Sequence record: OZ196285.1
DNA: 64,000 nt
Direction: 5' to 3' (one strand)
A program made the translations under genes and the position numbers. This document shows positions 21,929-63,190 of the stretch, in pieces. Within the stretch, counting starts at the first letter, position 1, and each line of letters starts with the position of its first letter. A model generated the notes under the pieces. It did not search any database, was not told the DNA's origin, and saw nothing but the letters and a program-made list of their open reading frames with translations.

Positions 21929-21984
21929 CTAATATTTCTAACATTTCTAATATCACTAAGTATACTAATTCTACTAAGATGATG
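21929..21984 (-). repeat. Six TTAG direct repeats at an exact 9-nt period (copy A)
   Basis: CTAA on the + strand at 21929, 21938, 21947, 21956, 21965, 21974. Confidence 0.9.
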
Positions 21985-22010
21985 TGGAATTTTTCCGGTC
22001 CGCTAGAAAC

Positions 22011-47721: not shown

Positions 47722-47931
47722 ATGCACGGTGATTTTTTAGTTGCGATGATTAAGGCATGGATTACTATCGTGCTGATCATCGTGGGATTGAGCGCAGTGG
47801 TAATTGGTGGCATTGGCTACGGGATATATCTTGTCGCAACTGGCACACTAGTGGGTGGTGGTGTTTTAATCATCGGCTTAGTGCTGCTTCTTATTTTATT
47901 GATTAAGTTATGGGGTGATATATGTTACTAG
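47722..47931 (+). CDS. Hypothetical two-helix membrane protein
   Basis: Two long hydrophobic Gly-rich segments. Confidence 0.65.
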   Translation: MHGDFLVAMIKAWITIVLIIVGLSAVVIGGIGYGIYLVATGTLVGGGVLIIGLVLLLILLIKLWGDICY

Positions 47932-48212
47932 CTGTATATGCCGAAGTAGACACGAATGATGGTGATTACGTTGGCGATTTGAAGCCAATTACGAGTGAAG
48001 ATGTCGAGCGTCTTGAAGAGCTTGTTCAACGTTCTGGTGATAGTCTAGCATCGTGGTCAGATGGCGAATGTCAAACGCAAAGCAATCATTTGGTGTATCC
48101 GATGTTCAGTCAAGATGAACTAAGCTTCATTGATGATTACTTGCCATCGCCTGAATACGGCTTTCACACGATTGAAACCATCAAAATCGTGCAGGTGCTA
48201 AACACTTTGTGA
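47922..48212 (+). CDS. Hypothetical acidic protein
   Basis: Coupled ORF. Confidence 0.65.
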   Translation: MLLAVYAEVDTNDGDYVGDLKPITSEDVERLEELVQRSGDSLASWSDGECQTQSNHLVYPMFSQDELSFIDDYLPSPEYGFHTIETIKIVQVLNTL

Positions 48213-48223
48213 TCTAAATCACA
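48208..48223. promoter_or_regulatory. CRP-like box
   Basis: TGTGATCTAAATCACA, 15/16 match to consensus TGTGATCTAGATCACA. Confidence 0.6.
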
Positions 48224-48237
48224 CAAAATATCAATAA

Positions 48238-48271
48238 AAGGGTTGCTTCGGCAACCCTTTTTGCGTATTAT
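48238..48271 (+). promoter_or_regulatory. Early promoter overlapping an intrinsic terminator
   Basis: TTGCTT (48243)-17-TATTAT (48266); hairpin AAAGGGTTGC-TTCG-GCAACCCTTTTT. Confidence 0.75.
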
Positions 48272-48304
48272 AGCTCTATCGAAACGAAACACAGAGAGAA
48301 CATT

Positions 48305-48634
48305 ATGACTGACTTAACTCAATTCGACATTAAAAACGCGACGCTTAAAGTCGTTTACTCACAGCGTGCAGAGCATCAGAAAGTTGCAATGATGACTGAA
48401 GACGGTTACATTTTTCTTCATGAAGTTCTTTTTATTGACCAGAAAGGTTCTTACTGTGAGTCTCGCGAGTTGTTCAGCACAACAGTTGAAAAGAAATGCG
48501 ACTGGCCGGGTTACGAGTCTGCTAAACTTATCGACAAGATTAAAGAAGCGGGTCAAGTGAGCCTACGTCACTGGCGTGCACCATCAGAAGCTGACATGGA
48601 AGAGTTCTCAATCACACAATGTTTCGAGGGGTAA
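48305..48634 (+). CDS. Early hypothetical protein
   Basis: GAGAGAACATTATG RBS. Confidence 0.75.
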   Translation: MTDLTQFDIKNATLKVVYSQRAEHQKVAMMTEDGYIFLHEVLFIDQKGSYCESRELFSTTVEKKCDWPGYESAKLIDKIKEAGQVSLRHWRAPSEADMEEFSITQCFEG

Positions 48635-50011: not shown

Positions 50012-50385
50012 AGAAATATAACCGATTAAATGAACTGGCGCGACTGTATCGACTGTCAGATAAGTATGTCGCTGATCTTCATGTTGACATCTTTCTAATC
50101 CCTCGCCACACTAGCGATGAAATTGAAGTGACAGGTGAAACATTCAAAGAGGTTCATCACGAAATCACCAAAGAAATCGTACGTTATACGAACATGTCGT
50201 ATGAAGAAGCTCGCTTGTTTCATGCGAACAATGATATCGAAGTTTGGTTTGGCGGAGATGAAATCATCGACACCGATGTTTATGCACCGTTTTATGTGCG
50301 TTATGATATCCCTAAGGACTTGTTACGCAAGTTCAACACTGAATACAAACAAGGGCCGAGTGCCACATTTGAGGAAGCAACTTGA
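50008..50385 (+). CDS. Hypothetical protein
   Basis: Coupled ORF. Confidence 0.65.
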   Translation: MKKYNRLNELARLYRLSDKYVADLHVDIFLIPRHTSDEIEVTGETFKEVHHEITKEIVRYTNMSYEEARLFHANNDIEVWFGGDEIIDTDVYAPFYVRYDIPKDLLRKFNTEYKQGPSATFEEAT

Positions 50386-51140
50386 GAATTTTTATTTTTA
50401 GCGGTGCGGGGCTTGATGCAGAGTCTGGCATTAGCACTTTCAGAGACGCAAATGGTCTCTGGGAGAATCACGACATCATGGAAGTTTGTAACTATCGAAC
50501 TTTCCCGAACAACTATGAGCTAGTGCATCGCTTTTACAACGCTCGTAGAAAGCAGCTTGCAGACGTTAGCCCCAATTCTGCTCACTTCAAGATTGCAGAG
50601 CTATGTGAGAAGCACACAGTGCTGAATTACACGGCAAACGTGTCTGATCTTCTTGAGCGGGCGGGATGTGAAGACGTTAAGCACATTCACGGTTATTTGC
50701 CCGAAGTAGTTATCGATTACAACAGCAAAGATTCGTACATCGAAGACATCGGCTACAACGACCATGACTACAGCAAATCTCGCAAAGACAAGCCAAATGT
50801 GGTGTTCTTTGGTGAAGGCGCACCTATGTATCAAGACTTTTGGGGTGATATCGACTCATTGACTCCACAAGACATCGCGATTGTTGTCGGTAGTACGCTT
50901 GAGATCAACCCTATTCATTGGGATATCCCGCCAACTGGTGCTAAATTCATTCTGATCAACCCGACTGGTATAGATACTGATAAAGCGACCTCACTCAACG
51001 AAGCGATTCGTATGTGTGATGTGTTTATTCAGAAACCTGCCACTGAGGCGTTCGATGAAATTGATCAGCACATTCAAGAACATATTGACTTGCATAGTCC
51101 ACACAATAGCATTGACCGTGCTAATCGTGGTAACTGGTAG
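50382..51140 (+). CDS. Sir2/CobB-family NAD-dependent enzyme
   Basis: FSGAGLDAESGISTFRD, HIHG, KPNVVFFGE, VVGSTL; TTG start. Confidence 0.92.
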   Translation: MRIFIFSGAGLDAESGISTFRDANGLWENHDIMEVCNYRTFPNNYELVHRFYNARRKQLADVSPNSAHFKIAELCEKHTVLNYTANVSDLLERAGCEDVKHIHGYLPEVVIDYNSKDSYIEDIGYNDHDYSKSRKDKPNVVFFGEGAPMYQDFWGDIDSLTPQDIAIVVGSTLEINPIHWDIPPTGAKFILINPTGIDTDKATSLNEAIRMCDVFIQKPATEAFDEIDQHIQEHIDLHSPHNSIDRANRGNW

Positions 51141-59915: not shown

Positions 59916-61604
59916 TTACGGTTTCAGTGACTTGCTGAACTTAACACGCGAACTCTCAGGCATCTTGTTGTCACCTGCTAGGAGAACAGTTGCTAGTGAT
60001 TCAAGCTCTTGTAAGCGTTCTTGTTTACGTTGAACCCCCACAATACTTTCACTGTAAGCTCCGCTATCACGTACACTCAGTCGGATGATTGCGTGCGACG
60101 CGTCTTCGTCCATTTGAATCACGTCTGCTTCGAATACCGTATTACGATTGACGATGAATTCGTTCTCACCCATTTGACCATTACGACCCGGAACGTAAAC
60201 CGGTAGACCGTCAGGCTCAATGATGAATACTACGCTCATTTTAGCACCATCAATGATTGCGTCTGACATCACTTGTTTGTTGTCAGTGCGCCCTTTGAAT
60301 AAAAGTCTATGACTAGAACATTCAGCAAATTCAATCGCAATCAGTGGGTCAATAGACGTACTCATGAACGCTGTTGATGCGAATAAGCCAGTTTGTAGAA
60401 TGCTACGAACATCACTGCCGCGCATTTCTAAGCCGCGATATAGAGTCGGTGCAGGTTGAATGTTGTGAGCTAGTACGCCCGCTTGTTCAAACGCCTCATC
60501 AATATCGGTGATGATTTTGTGTGTCTTATCGTCGCCTTTACCAGTCAGTAGATGTTGATTTACATTCCAGTCTTGTGCGCCAGTGTATCGAGCAACTGAG
60601 CCTTGAACTTCAGGTGTTACGTCAGCCCATGCAGGTGTTTGTTGTAACTGAACTGATAGACGATTGTACACGTTTTCATATTCGAGTGACTTCACTTGCA
60701 GTGTAGCCGTGATAATGCGCTTAACTGCGTCTTCGTGCTTTTCTGGTACAGCGTCAATCGACGGTGCAAGACGTTCAGAGATTGTCATCAAGTCAACTGG
60801 CAAGTCGATAGTACCAAGAGCTACACGAGCAAGTGCCGCAGCTTCAGGTGACATAAGGCTAGTCGCTTCGTCTTCTAGACGTCGACGATACACACGAGCA
60901 TTAACCGGCTCATTCGTTGGCATGATCATTGGGTCATTGGTAACGCGACGTGCCGGCGTTTCTTCGATCCATTCAGCTTTCACTTCGTCATGAAACTCTT
61001 CGAATCCCGGTACCATATCAGCAGTCACAATGATTGCTTTCTTAGTTGAGATATCGCCTTCTTTTGTCATCTTAGCTGCAATCTGGTTGATTGTGTCTGT
61101 TGACTCAAGAAGCTTGTCAGTGTTGTACCCTGGCTTATTGATAACGAAGAAGCTGTAATCTTCAGCCATTTCAGCGTCACCAACGTTCAAGATTTTAGTC
61201 GTTTCGCAGCCGTAACGCAGTTTGCGGAACAACGTTTTAACGCGCATGTCGAAAATCTTACCACTGCCTTTCTTTTGCACGCGCATCGACACAGCGTTAG
61301 CACGTACTTTCAGCATGAATTCCTGAACGAGTTTAACAAGAGTTTCTTGGAACTTTTGTTGATCGCCCATATCGCGAATAGTCAGCCCGCCTTTCTTACC
61401 GCGCATTGCAGTAACAGTACAGAACCACGTACGCTTAGTGCGGTCACCTAGACCTGTTTTTGTTTTTGTAGTAAACGTCACCACAACATCTTTAGTTTCA
61501 CCTTGCATGTCGATCACAAAGTATCTGTCAACTTTAGTAGAACGAGCAGGGTAATAATTGTATGTTGAGGCAGTCGTTTCGTTTAATTCTTGAAATCCAA
61601 TCAT
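59916..61604 (-). CDS. alt: Alt-like ADP-ribosyltransferase
   Basis: YTG, LYRG, FMSTS, ENE R-S-E motifs; start MIGFQELNE at 61604; CATAAATA at 61636-43 (-); next to gene 30. Confidence 0.85.
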   Translation of the reverse strand: MIGFQELNETTASTYNYYPARSTKVDRYFVIDMQGETKDVVVTFTTKTKTGLGDRTKRTWFCTVTAMRGKKGGLTIRDMGDQQKFQETLVKLVQEFMLKVRANAVSMRVQKKGSGKIFDMRVKTLFRKLRYGCETTKILNVGDAEMAEDYSFFVINKPGYNTDKLLESTDTINQIAAKMTKEGDISTKKAIIVTADMVPGFEEFHDEVKAEWIEETPARRVTNDPMIMPTNEPVNARVYRRRLEDEATSLMSPEAAALARVALGTIDLPVDLMTISERLAPSIDAVPEKHEDAVKRIITATLQVKSLEYENVYNRLSVQLQQTPAWADVTPEVQGSVARYTGAQDWNVNQHLLTGKGDDKTHKIITDIDEAFEQAGVLAHNIQPAPTLYRGLEMRGSDVRSILQTGLFASTAFMSTSIDPLIAIEFAECSSHRLLFKGRTDNKQVMSDAIIDGAKMSVVFIIEPDGLPVYVPGRNGQMGENEFIVNRNTVFEADVIQMDEDASHAIIRLSVRDSGAYSESIVGVQRKQERLQELESLATVLLAGDNKMPESSRVKFSKSLKP

Positions 61605-61695
61605 TTTTAAACTCGCCTTTAGAGAAATATACCTGTATTTATGAGGGTGCATAACACCCGTATTTAACTATTTAAACATTTTTTGTAGAAAGTGG

Positions 61696-61724
61696 TTGCA
61701 CGATAGTTCGAATTTGCCTAATAT
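61696..61724 (+). promoter_or_regulatory. Early promoter
   Basis: GG-TTGCAC-17-TAATAT then CTCAACGAAAC and a GAGAGAATATTATG RBS. Confidence 0.8.
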
Positions 61725-61766
61725 CTTTCTCAACGAAACAAAACAACTTCACACAGAGAGAATATT

Positions 61767-62273
61767 ATGAACGCACAGAACATGACTAACGAACAAATCG
61801 CTGCTCACTTCGACATGACCGTAGATACAACTGGTATGCCTTACGCATACGATGCAAAAGGTCGTCGTCATTTCATCACTGATTTGCGTACTCGTGTTCG
61901 TAAAGAAGCAACTAAGAAGAAAGCACGCAAAGTTGCAGCAGAAAAAGCTCCAAAGGTGAGTGCTGAAGAGCTTCTAGCTGAACTGCAAGTATCGTCAGAC
62001 GATGCATGGGCAATTCGCGAGTCTCAACCTGGGTTTGACGTTGAATCGCTTGGCATGAACGTGTACATCACTGCGGGTTACGAAGACAAACATCGCCTTA
62101 TGATTCGCTCAAGTGTTGTTACACTGAAGGAAATCGAGCGCGAATTCGGTCATATGCGTATCAACTCTCAAAAAGAAGCTGTTCATCGCAACAAAGCAAC
62201 AATGATTGTTTCTGGTCTTTCTGTGAAAGAAATCGTCGATACAATTGAACAATTCAAAGTTCTTAGCAATTAA
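61767..62273 (+). CDS. Early hypothetical basic protein
   Basis: Strong RBS, Lys/Ala-rich linker. Confidence 0.75.
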   Translation: MNAQNMTNEQIAAHFDMTVDTTGMPYAYDAKGRRHFITDLRTRVRKEATKKKARKVAAEKAPKVSAEELLAELQVSSDDAWAIRESQPGFDVESLGMNVYITAGYEDKHRLMIRSSVVTLKEIEREFGHMRINSQKEAVHRNKATMIVSGLSVKEIVDTIEQFKVLSN

Positions 62274-62289
62274 TGTGAACTAAATCACA
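62274..62289. promoter_or_regulatory. CRP-like box
   Basis: TGTGA-ACTAAA-TCACA with AT-rich flanks. Confidence 0.6.
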
Positions 62290-62301
62290 AAAAAGTAGCT
62301 T

Positions 62302-62337
62302 TCGGGTATTGACTCTAACACAGTAATACCCGATAAT
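62302..62337 (+). promoter_or_regulatory. Early promoter with a 9-bp inverted repeat
   Basis: TTGACT (62309)-17-GATAAT (62332); arms at 62302-10 and 62325-33. Confidence 0.75.
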
Positions 62338-62383
62338 AGACACATCAAAACGAAACACACAAACTACTTAAAGCGAGAACATT

Positions 62384-63190
62384 ATGACAATCACTAAACA
62401 AGAAATGACAGCAATCGCACTTGACCTTATGTCTGGTAACAACTTAATGCAACGTGACCTACTTGCTGAAGGTTGGGTATTTGGTTGGTCAACTCGCACT
62501 GCTGCACTAGGTGATTGTTCATACCGCGATAAAGAGATTCGTCTTTCTTCAAAGTTTCTGAATGCACGTACTAAAGAAGAGCAAATCAACACAATCACTC
62601 ACGAAATGGCTCACGCAATCGCATGGACTGATTTCAACGAACGTGGTCACGGTGCTATCTGGAAACGTGTTCATCGTCAACTTGGTGGTAATGCCGAGCG
62701 TTGTTCAACAGTTAGCAACCCTGAAGCAGTTGAAAGCAAATACACGGTGTTCTTCATCAACGCTAACGACGAAATCGAAGTGATTCAAACAACTGAGCGT
62801 ATGACTCGTAAGTTTCGCCCACAAAACATCAAAACACTATACTTGGGCCGCCGTAAAGCTGAAACTCAAGGTAAGATTCGCTGTGTAGCTACATCGACTT
62901 TCAAATCAATCAAAGCTGATCATGAAGCATCTAAAGCATCTAAAGCTGCTCCCGTTGCTGCACCTGCTCCTAAGAAAGTAGAAAAGAAAGCTGCACCTGC
63001 TAAGAAAACAACTGCACGTGGTGAAGCTGCACGACGCGAAATCGAAGCACATGTAACAGCAACAATGGGCTTCTCAAACGTATCATTCGAACAGCGTGGC
63101 AAGTACAAAGACTGGTACATCACTGCAACAGTAAACGGTAACATGTTTGAGCAACGTCTAGACGCATTCAAAAAGAAAAACGGTTTATAA
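62384..63190 (+). CDS. SprT-like zinc metalloprotease
   Basis: THEMAHA HExxH, HGAIWK; Ala/Lys/Pro-rich linker and small C-terminal domain. Confidence 0.85.
   Translation: MTITKQEMTAIALDLMSGNNLMQRDLLAEGWVFGWSTRTAALGDCSYRDKEIRLSSKFLNARTKEEQINTITHEMAHAIAWTDFNERGHGAIWKRVHRQLGGNAERCSTVSNPEAVESKYTVFFINANDEIEVIQTTERMTRKFRPQNIKTLYLGRRKAETQGKIRCVATSTFKSIKADHEASKASKAAPVAAPAPKKVEKKAAPAKKTTARGEAARREIEAHVTATMGFSNVSFEQRGKYKDWYITATVNGNMFEQRLDAFKKKNGL

Follow-up and report, generated by a model that had tools for sequence, protein, structure and literature searches.

The locus in Vibrio phage F86

The stretch of DNA analysed here (the window, 64,000 nucleotides) corresponds to positions 1-64000 of the genome of Vibrio phage F86 (OZ196285.1; 228,383 bp), and window coordinates are identical with record coordinates. 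The source of the phage is seawater and oysters. F86 belongs to the KVP40 group of T4-type phages and shows synteny with KVP40, VH7D/ValKK3, nt-1 and the D527/6E35 group, the conserved genes having ~75-80% DNA identity, and only ~4-8% of its genome is non-coding. The following features are found at the locus under study (promoter hexamers are predicted):

47922-48212, + strand: VPHF86_0064, 96 aa, function not assigned; gene 5' of the box, no Pfam family found
48208-48223, no strand given: CRP-type palindrome TGTGATCTAAATCACA (the box) at the 5' end of an intergenic cassette
48236-48261, + strand: stem-loop AAAAGGGTTGC-TTCG-GCAACCCTTTT of the PeSL/PmSL kind, with the -35 hexamer inside; terminator-like in both directions
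48243-48248, + strand: -35 hexamer TTGCTT
48266-48271, + strand: -10 hexamer TATTAT, after a 17-nt spacer
48272-48304, + strand: conserved cassette leader AGCTCTATCGAAACGAAAC...GAGAGAACATT, Shine-Dalgarno sequence at ~48293-48299
48305-48634, + strand: VPHF86_0065 (phrog_13219, function not assigned), beginning with ATG; first gene of the downstream unit

The box overlaps the end of the preceding gene, the TGA stop of VPHF86_0064 (48210-48212) falling within its left half-site. Compared with the 16-mer CRP consensus TGTGATCTAGATCACA, it is identical at 15 of 16 positions, as the original prediction had stated. The hairpin AAAAGGGTTGC-TTCG-GCAACCCTTTT, which begins 12 nt after the box and is repeated at several other intergenic sites, was also reported by the terminator scan (RNA fold -16.3 kcal/mol, z -5.6).

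The unit starting with VPHF86_0065 probably runs through 0066 (like 0065, a PHROG without assigned function), an HNH endonuclease gene, 0068, 0069 and the Sir2 gene (0070); the terminator scan found no + strand terminator-like site between 48305 and 51400. The original prediction had placed an Srd-like and a Sir2 gene in this operon. Sir2 does belong to the probable unit, but the Srd-like assignment is backed by neither Pfam nor PHROGs. Note that Sir2 (VPHF86_0070) is annotated from 50478, while an open reading frame in the same frame (50382-51140) starts from a TTG at 50382 that overlaps the 0069 stop. The Sir2 PHROG profile aligns with the annotated protein only from profile position 43. The true start may therefore lie further upstream than annotated, in which case the apparent 92-nt gap after 0069 would vanish.

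Number and position of the CRP-type boxes

A second box lies in the window between an alc-like gene and a sprT-like gene, and two more are found further along the record:

62274-62289, no strand given: CRP-type palindrome TGTGAACTAAATCACA, directly 3' of the TAA stop of VPHF86_0089 (alc-like)
62302-62333, + strand: stem-loop GGGTATT...AATACCC enclosing the promoter (fold -13.1 kcal/mol, z -3.9)
62309-62337, + strand: predicted promoter TTGACT, 17-nt spacer, GATAAT (the latter starting at 62332)
62384-63190, + strand: VPHF86_0090, SprT-like metalloprotease family (Pfam PF10263, E 1.1e-19)
record position 145808, beyond the window: box TGTGACGTAGATCACG, one mismatch, directly 3' of the nadV/NAMPT stop
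record position 149118, beyond the window: box CGTGAACTAAATCACA, one mismatch, directly 3' of the gene 0244 stop

Upstream of the second box, at 59916-62273, a gene for an Alt-like RNA polymerase ADP-ribosyltransferase (- strand) stands back to back with that for the alc-like host-transcription inhibitor. The 114-nt divergent control region of this pair contains another cassette-type promoter (TTGCAC at 61696).

The exact motif TGTGA-N6-TCACA occurs in the window at 48208 and 62274 and nowhere else, compared with 0.22 occurrences expected from shuffles; two exact matches were reached in 2 of 100 shuffles of the window. Sites were scored by match counts against the consensus core. By this measure the boxes at 48208 and 62274 match the core at 10 of 10 positions, and those at record positions 145808 and 149118 at 9 of 10. 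The statement of the original prediction that the other early promoters lack the box thus holds within the window but not genome-wide. The shorter motif GTGA-N6-TCAC is found 14 times in the whole F86 genome (~6.6 expected), and four times in intergenic DNA (~0.24 expected for ~19 kb of crudely defined non-coding sequence). Chance alone explains the boxes poorly, although the four F86 boxes are paralogues and hence not independent events, so that these counts overstate the independent support.

The distance from the box centre to the first base of the -35 hexamer is 27.5 nt at both 48208 and 62274, which bears out the second box at an identical offset from the 62309 promoter that had been claimed before. 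Measured to the -10 hexamer, the distance is 50.5 nt; the same measurement on the E. coli lac promoter, taken as a control, gives 49.5 nt, equivalent to -61.5, the established position of the lac CRP site. If the -10 hexamer is taken as -12 to -7, the boxes at three F86 loci are centred at ~-62.5 with respect to the predicted hexamers, in agreement with the earlier figure. The box downstream of 0244 is centred at ~-80.5 to -81.5 (again from predicted hexamers). This shift of 18-19 bp relative to the ~-62.5 position does not equal whole helical turns, and the site is 1-2 bp off the classical -82.5; both points tell against the class I reading.

The boxes belong to a family of promoter cassettes

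The boxes form the 5' ends of intergenic cassettes of the PeSL/PmSL type, each made up of a stem-loop, a promoter and a conserved leader. Mobile promoter-terminator cassettes of this kind are known from T4-type phages, including nt-1 and KVP40 (Arbiol et al. 2010, PMC2839356; Comeau et al. 2014, PMC4122927); that the boxes are part of them was not recognised in the original prediction. An nhmmer search with a profile built from the box-bearing copies (E < 0.02) revealed ~16 cassette copies in the F86 genome, four of them with a box, so only a subset of promoters bears it, as had been proposed. In all, the architecture is a stem-loop and a sigma-70-like promoter followed by the conserved leader, a Shine-Dalgarno sequence and a start codon, and the cassettes occur at insertion/deletion breakpoints, e.g., two extra ORFs in D527 and a PagP-like insertion in nt-1. 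In the latter phage (NC_021529, 54915-55750), the gene inserted between nadV and the usual downstream gene is PagP-like (annotation: lipid A acylation protein); it is bordered by two cassettes, of which one has a box and the other does not, a clean PeSL-bounded gene insertion. Furthermore, the leader motif ATAGCTACATCGAAAC, located 3' of the -10 hexamer, is common to the Vibrio phages and the distant Aeromonas phage Aeh1, which points to a conserved element in the initial transcribed or 5' untranslated region.

The 48208 promoter had been called an early promoter. Its sigma-70 type is evident from the predicted hexamers, but the early class was assumed: the TGCTT...TATTAT subtype of F86 matches PmSL, which is termed "middle-like" by Comeau et al. 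2014 (PMC4122927). A MotA-type middle promoter was considered and rejected, as TGCTT (48244-48248) is located 17 nt before the -10 hexamer, i.e. at the -35 and not the -30 position; moreover, KVP40 and nt-1 possess no recognisable motA (PMC2988021).

At the fixed offset, ~35 other plausible cassette or early-type promoters of F86 match the CRP core at no more than 5 of 10 positions. Near-identical core promoters without a box exist as well, e.g., at 111576 and 81998, where the upstream gene ends at the place the box would occupy. CRP is therefore not obligatory for this core promoter, and any dependence would be partial at most. With a 4/6 -35 hexamer, a 5/6 -10 hexamer and a 17-nt spacer, these core promoters may need no activator.

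Another repeated element of F86 is present in two copies, at window positions 21930-22010 (- strand) and at record positions 106405-106500 (+ strand). It starts with GGAAAAATTCC(A/G)CATCATCTTAGTAGAATTAGT, continues with iterated TTAG-containing repeats (e.g., GGGATATTAGGGATATTAG) and has a near-consensus promoter at its end (TTGATC, 17-nt spacer, TATAAT in one copy; TTGACA, 17-nt spacer, TAGAAT in the other). Its sequence would be compatible with an array of operators or with an origin-like set of iterons.

Conservation of the boxes in related phages

Three of the box loci are kept at orthologous positions in related phages, namely between alc and the sprT-like gene, downstream of nadV and downstream of 0244. 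The genome-wide scans took in the remaining F86 genome and the complete KVP40 genome; in a wider sampling of IMG/VR, the sole returns were KVP40 and VH7D.

The box between alc and the sprT-like gene is present in syntenic position in KVP40, VH7D, PVA8, nt-1 and D527, with the variants TGTGAACTAACTCACG, TTTGAAATAATTCACG, TGTGACTTAGATCGCG and TGTGATTTAAGTCACG among these relatives. Its offset to the -35 hexamer is 27.5 nt (26.5 nt in PVA8), and both promoter hexamers are unchanged across six phages. In the region 62296-62340, the stem enclosing the promoter co-varies (GGGTATT/AATACCC in F86, GGATATT/AATATCC in nt-1, GGGATTGAC/GTCAATCCC in VH7D).

The nadV box is kept in D527, KVP40, VH1_2019, VH7D, VS1 and nt-1, and its GTGA and ATCAC never change. 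The 19 nt between box and -35 hexamer have diverged in sequence at this locus, but their length is fixed, except for nt-1 with 17 nt. In nt-1 the box is accordingly 2 bp nearer, at ~-60.5, and the range in the relatives is -60.5 to -62.5 (predicted hexamers); the gene downstream has been replaced in this phage and the box retained. No box is found at nadV in Vibrio phage 1.081.O (an ORF is inserted), Aeromonas phage Aeh1 (a box-less PeSL-like cassette) and RB43 (overlapping genes).

The 0244 box is kept in KVP40 (CATGACTTGAATCACA) and VH7D (TGTGACTTGAATCACA). Boxes of this type are followed by a separate terminator after 4-5 nt, and their distance to the -35 hexamer is 45.5-46.5 nt. The scan of the whole KVP40 genome revealed no box-bearing promoters besides the three orthologous loci; there is thus no wider regulon, which counts against the CRP reading.

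The 48208 box is a different case. The orthologous cassettes 5' of the gene-0065 homologues in D527, VH1_2019 and VH7D have no box, so that this copy is specific for F86; D527 carries two extra small genes at the orthologous locus. The 48208 cassette has 89% identity to the nadV cassette of F86 and 97% to that of D527, the box and the following CACAAAA included. On these sequence identities, the simplest reading is that a nadV-type box-bearing cassette was copied or recombined, apparently in recent times, into a hyperplastic spot in the F86 lineage. The proposal of a CRP palindrome at class I distance upstream of the 48208 promoter hence finds support in the match, the geometry and three conserved sister loci, but the 48208 copy itself is not conserved.

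Position statistics were drawn from 15 different boxes, which represent three loci and as many as seven phage lineages. T3, G4, A5, T12, C13 and C15 are invariant, G2 is found in 13 and A14 in 14 of the 15 boxes, and the outer positions 1 and 16 as well as spacer positions 6-7 vary freely. Spacer positions 8-11 (TARA) are conserved too, which could reflect common descent. The upstream stop codon shifts relative to the box (in F86 0064 and D527 alc it falls within the box, in the other cases it immediately precedes it), while the distance between box and promoter is fixed. The half-sites and the promoter spacing are thus kept and the flanks and part of the spacer are free, as would be expected for the site of a dimeric protein set relative to the promoter. 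Judged by the alignments, this pattern is that of neither an RNA hairpin nor neutral sequence, and at the three conserved loci the box is very probably a functional element.

Host cAMP-CRP as candidate ligand

The conserved bases of the box are those contacted by CRP, and a tblastn search with E. coli CRP detected no CRP-family protein encoded by F86 or KVP40 (E >= 0.6); both observations favour host cAMP-CRP as the ligand. The outer T and A of a CRP site are less critical, and the recognition helix of Vibrio CRP is nearly identical to that of E. coli CRP. We see about an even chance that the boxes are sites for a dimer of host cAMP-CRP acting in class I fashion. A weak match of the F86 gene 0135 product to CRP was rejected, since it concerns a hydrophobic segment and no HTH family is involved.

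FNR had been named beforehand as an alternative binder. Read against the FNR site TTGAT-N4-ATCAA, the 48208 box (GTGAT-N4-ATCAC) matches at 8 of 10 positions, and both mismatches fall on the positions that discriminate between CRP and FNR; the box has the CRP-type G and C there, and these are conserved in 13-15 of the 15 boxes. FNR was rejected on these grounds.

In the preferred reading, CRP bound at ~-62.5 would contact the alpha C-terminal domain of the host RNA polymerase, which would sit on the A-tract just 5' of the -35 hexamer, and through this contact, transcription from the sigma-70-type cassette promoter would start more often, in the class I manner of lac P1. As the same core promoter is found elsewhere without a box, a few units would be boosted by CRP without requiring it: the sprT-like gene, the module that follows nadV, the gene behind 0244 and, solely in F86, the unit from 0065 to Sir2. 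No function is assigned to the genes behind nadV and 0244. We infer the binding of CRP, the promoter starts as predicted, the activating effect and the carbon-status read-out alike; that the phage uses the box to read the carbon status of its host is plausible.

In T4, Alt and ModA ADP-ribosylate Arg265 of alpha, and polymerase modified by ModA can interact neither with UP elements nor with CRP (PMC2988021). Because F86 encodes an Alt-like enzyme, any effect of CRP might last only for the first moments of infection. A blocking of CRP by 7-deazaguanine DNA modification was considered as well; with only ~0.1-0.2% of G present as 7-deazaguanine in nt-1 (PMC6884629), it poses no obstacle. F86 itself has FolE, QueC and QueE-type genes of the 7-deazaguanine pathway (record positions 96920-101288, 136546-137247 and 160347-161216), and its DNA may therefore carry low levels of dPreQ0 or dG+, as measured in nt-1.

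CRP could also bind without activating. It would then stand as a roadblock or insulator that separates the upstream gene from the terminator-promoter stem-loop, or it would repress, as it does in phage T1. At every locus the box is flanked by the 3' end of the preceding gene and a terminator-like hairpin, the 0244 box abuts its terminator (4 nt) and is off-phase from the promoter, and the box-less twins of the promoter suggest that activation is not needed. However, a centre at ~-62.5 is outside the polymerase contacts and thus an unusual place for repression, the promoter spacing is kept within 0-2 bp at two loci across lineages, as a face-of-helix contact predicts, and the terminator stem follows the box at a variable distance (4 to 16 nt). 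We consider a non-activating role unlikely.

The same low probability may be given to the box being the operator of another dimeric protein, either a phage regulator or a different host factor, its likeness to a CRP site being coincidental or convergent. KVP40-like phages possess AsiA but no recognisable MotA, so that a further phage transcription factor is to be expected (PMC2988021). Most F86 genes are without assigned function, and TARA at positions 8-11 is kept beyond the needs of a minimal CRP core. On the other hand, TAGA at these positions is already the CRP consensus spacer, and the conserved positions are precisely the CRP-contacted GTGA and TCAC at a 6-bp spacing, with the outer T and A varying as they do in CRP sites. 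As no phage homologue of CRP/FNR was found, a phage protein would have to mimic this specificity with another fold.

Slimmer still is the chance that the box is a passenger devoid of present function, spread and kept through recombination between PeSL cassettes. These cassettes are known to shuffle (PMC2839356, PMC4122927), and the 48208 cassette, 89-97% identical to those of the nadV type and missing from the orthologous place in relatives, indicates that cassettes are copied with the box included. Yet the half-sites are kept at three loci though the flanking non-coding DNA has strongly diverged, the extra ~35 nt are retained in a genome with so little non-coding DNA, and the length from box to promoter is conserved.

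Finally, it is very improbable that the box acts at the RNA level, as a UGUGA-loop-UCACA hairpin just before the terminator, formed by the untranslated 3' end of the preceding gene's transcript and affecting its stability or processing: the box does lie between stop codon and terminator at every locus, can be folded (-4.0 to -4.7 kcal/mol, z -2.6 to -3.4) and retains G-U pairs in several A-to-G changes of its 3' half, but the hairpin is weak, its left arm is within coding sequence in F86 0064 and D527 alc, the conserved spacing is that to the downstream promoter, and no Rfam family matches the region (single hit, 12.5 bits vs a threshold of 382). Pair 1-16 is Watson-Crick, G-U and mismatched in five boxes each and pair 2-15 is mismatched in two, i.e. 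7 of the 30 cells of these pairs are non-pairing with no double compensatory change, and the inner pairs never vary and so lend no support to a structure. Changes that are not compensatory fit independent half-site recognition rather than a hairpin.

Taking activation by host cAMP-CRP as the preferred reading, a broader scenario can be outlined, which we put forward as a tentative and somewhat doubtful whole. Before Schizotequatrovirus and Mylasvirus separated, KVP40-like T4-type vibriophages would already have had a few promoter cassettes activated by host cAMP-CRP, and they would have retained them ever since. Through these cassettes, a few early modules would be coupled to the carbon state of the host: the sprT-like gene that follows alc, the genes behind nadV (NAD salvage) and the gene behind 0244. 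When the mobile PeSL cassette moves, the CRP input would move with it, as at 48208 in F86, and this input would be switched off automatically once Alt/Mod-type enzymes ADP-ribosylate alpha.

Significance and comparison with known systems

The early programme of T4-type phages is thought to rely on very strong constitutive promoters and the phages' own polymerase modifiers, and not on host global regulators. If the CRP reading is true, a conserved CRP input would give large marine vibriophages a direct read-out of the nutritional state of the host, PeSL cassettes could carry regulatory inputs on moving, and a natural system would be at hand for studying ADP-ribosylation of alpha Arg265 versus an activator that needs the same surface. 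Even without CRP binding, the boxes would be a conserved and unexplained operator in a well-studied phage group.

As in class I CRP promoters such as lac P1, the phage motif TGTGA-N6-TCACA is centred ~61-62 bp 5' of the predicted start of a sigma-70 promoter, with an A/T-rich stretch between box and -35 hexamer as a possible seat of the alpha C-terminal domain; as in lac, the box closely follows the stop codon of the upstream gene. In contrast to lac P1, the phage core promoter is much nearer to the consensus and is found elsewhere in the genome without a box, its -35 hexamer is buried in a terminator-like stem-loop, and the box centre is located 1 bp further upstream. Moreover, the phage box, known here from sequence, resides on the genome of a virulent phage, and relatives of this phage modify the very alpha subunit on which CRP depends.

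T4 early transcription likewise uses strong sigma-70 promoters whose upstream elements are recognised by the alpha C-terminal domain (PMC2988021). Like T4, F86 has Alt-like and Alc-like proteins, encoded beside one of the boxes; in T4, the modification of alpha is expected to block the action of CRP. To our knowledge, T4 early promoters have not been reported to contain a site for a host activator, and we found no report in the literature of CRP sites in KVP40-like or other T4-type phages.

A precedent for host CRP acting on a phage comes from T1, the promoters of which are directly regulated by host cAMP-CRP, with repression of pir, dam and recE and a lysogeny-like state (Laganenka et al. 2019, PMC6737242). 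If the CRP reading holds, F86 would resemble T1 in that host CRP acts on the promoters of a virulent-type phage and ties expression to sugar uptake (PMC6737242). Unlike in T1, where the effect is repression, the predicted geometry in the T4-type phage F86 suggests that a few early units would be activated.

With the PeSL/PmSL cassettes, the F86 elements share the combination of stem-loop, sigma-70-like promoter, Shine-Dalgarno sequence and start codon, the many copies per genome, the location at insertion/deletion points between related phages and the stem A3-4G3...C3T3-4. However, the PeSL papers (PMC2839356, PMC4122927) give only an AT-rich region 5' of the -35 hexamer and never mention CRP, whereas a subset of the F86 cassettes has a defined 16-bp palindrome ~19 nt upstream of the -35 hexamer. 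Class I CRP promoters and PeSL cassettes are thus each well known; what appears to be new is a PeSL cassette equipped with a conserved CRP-type operator.
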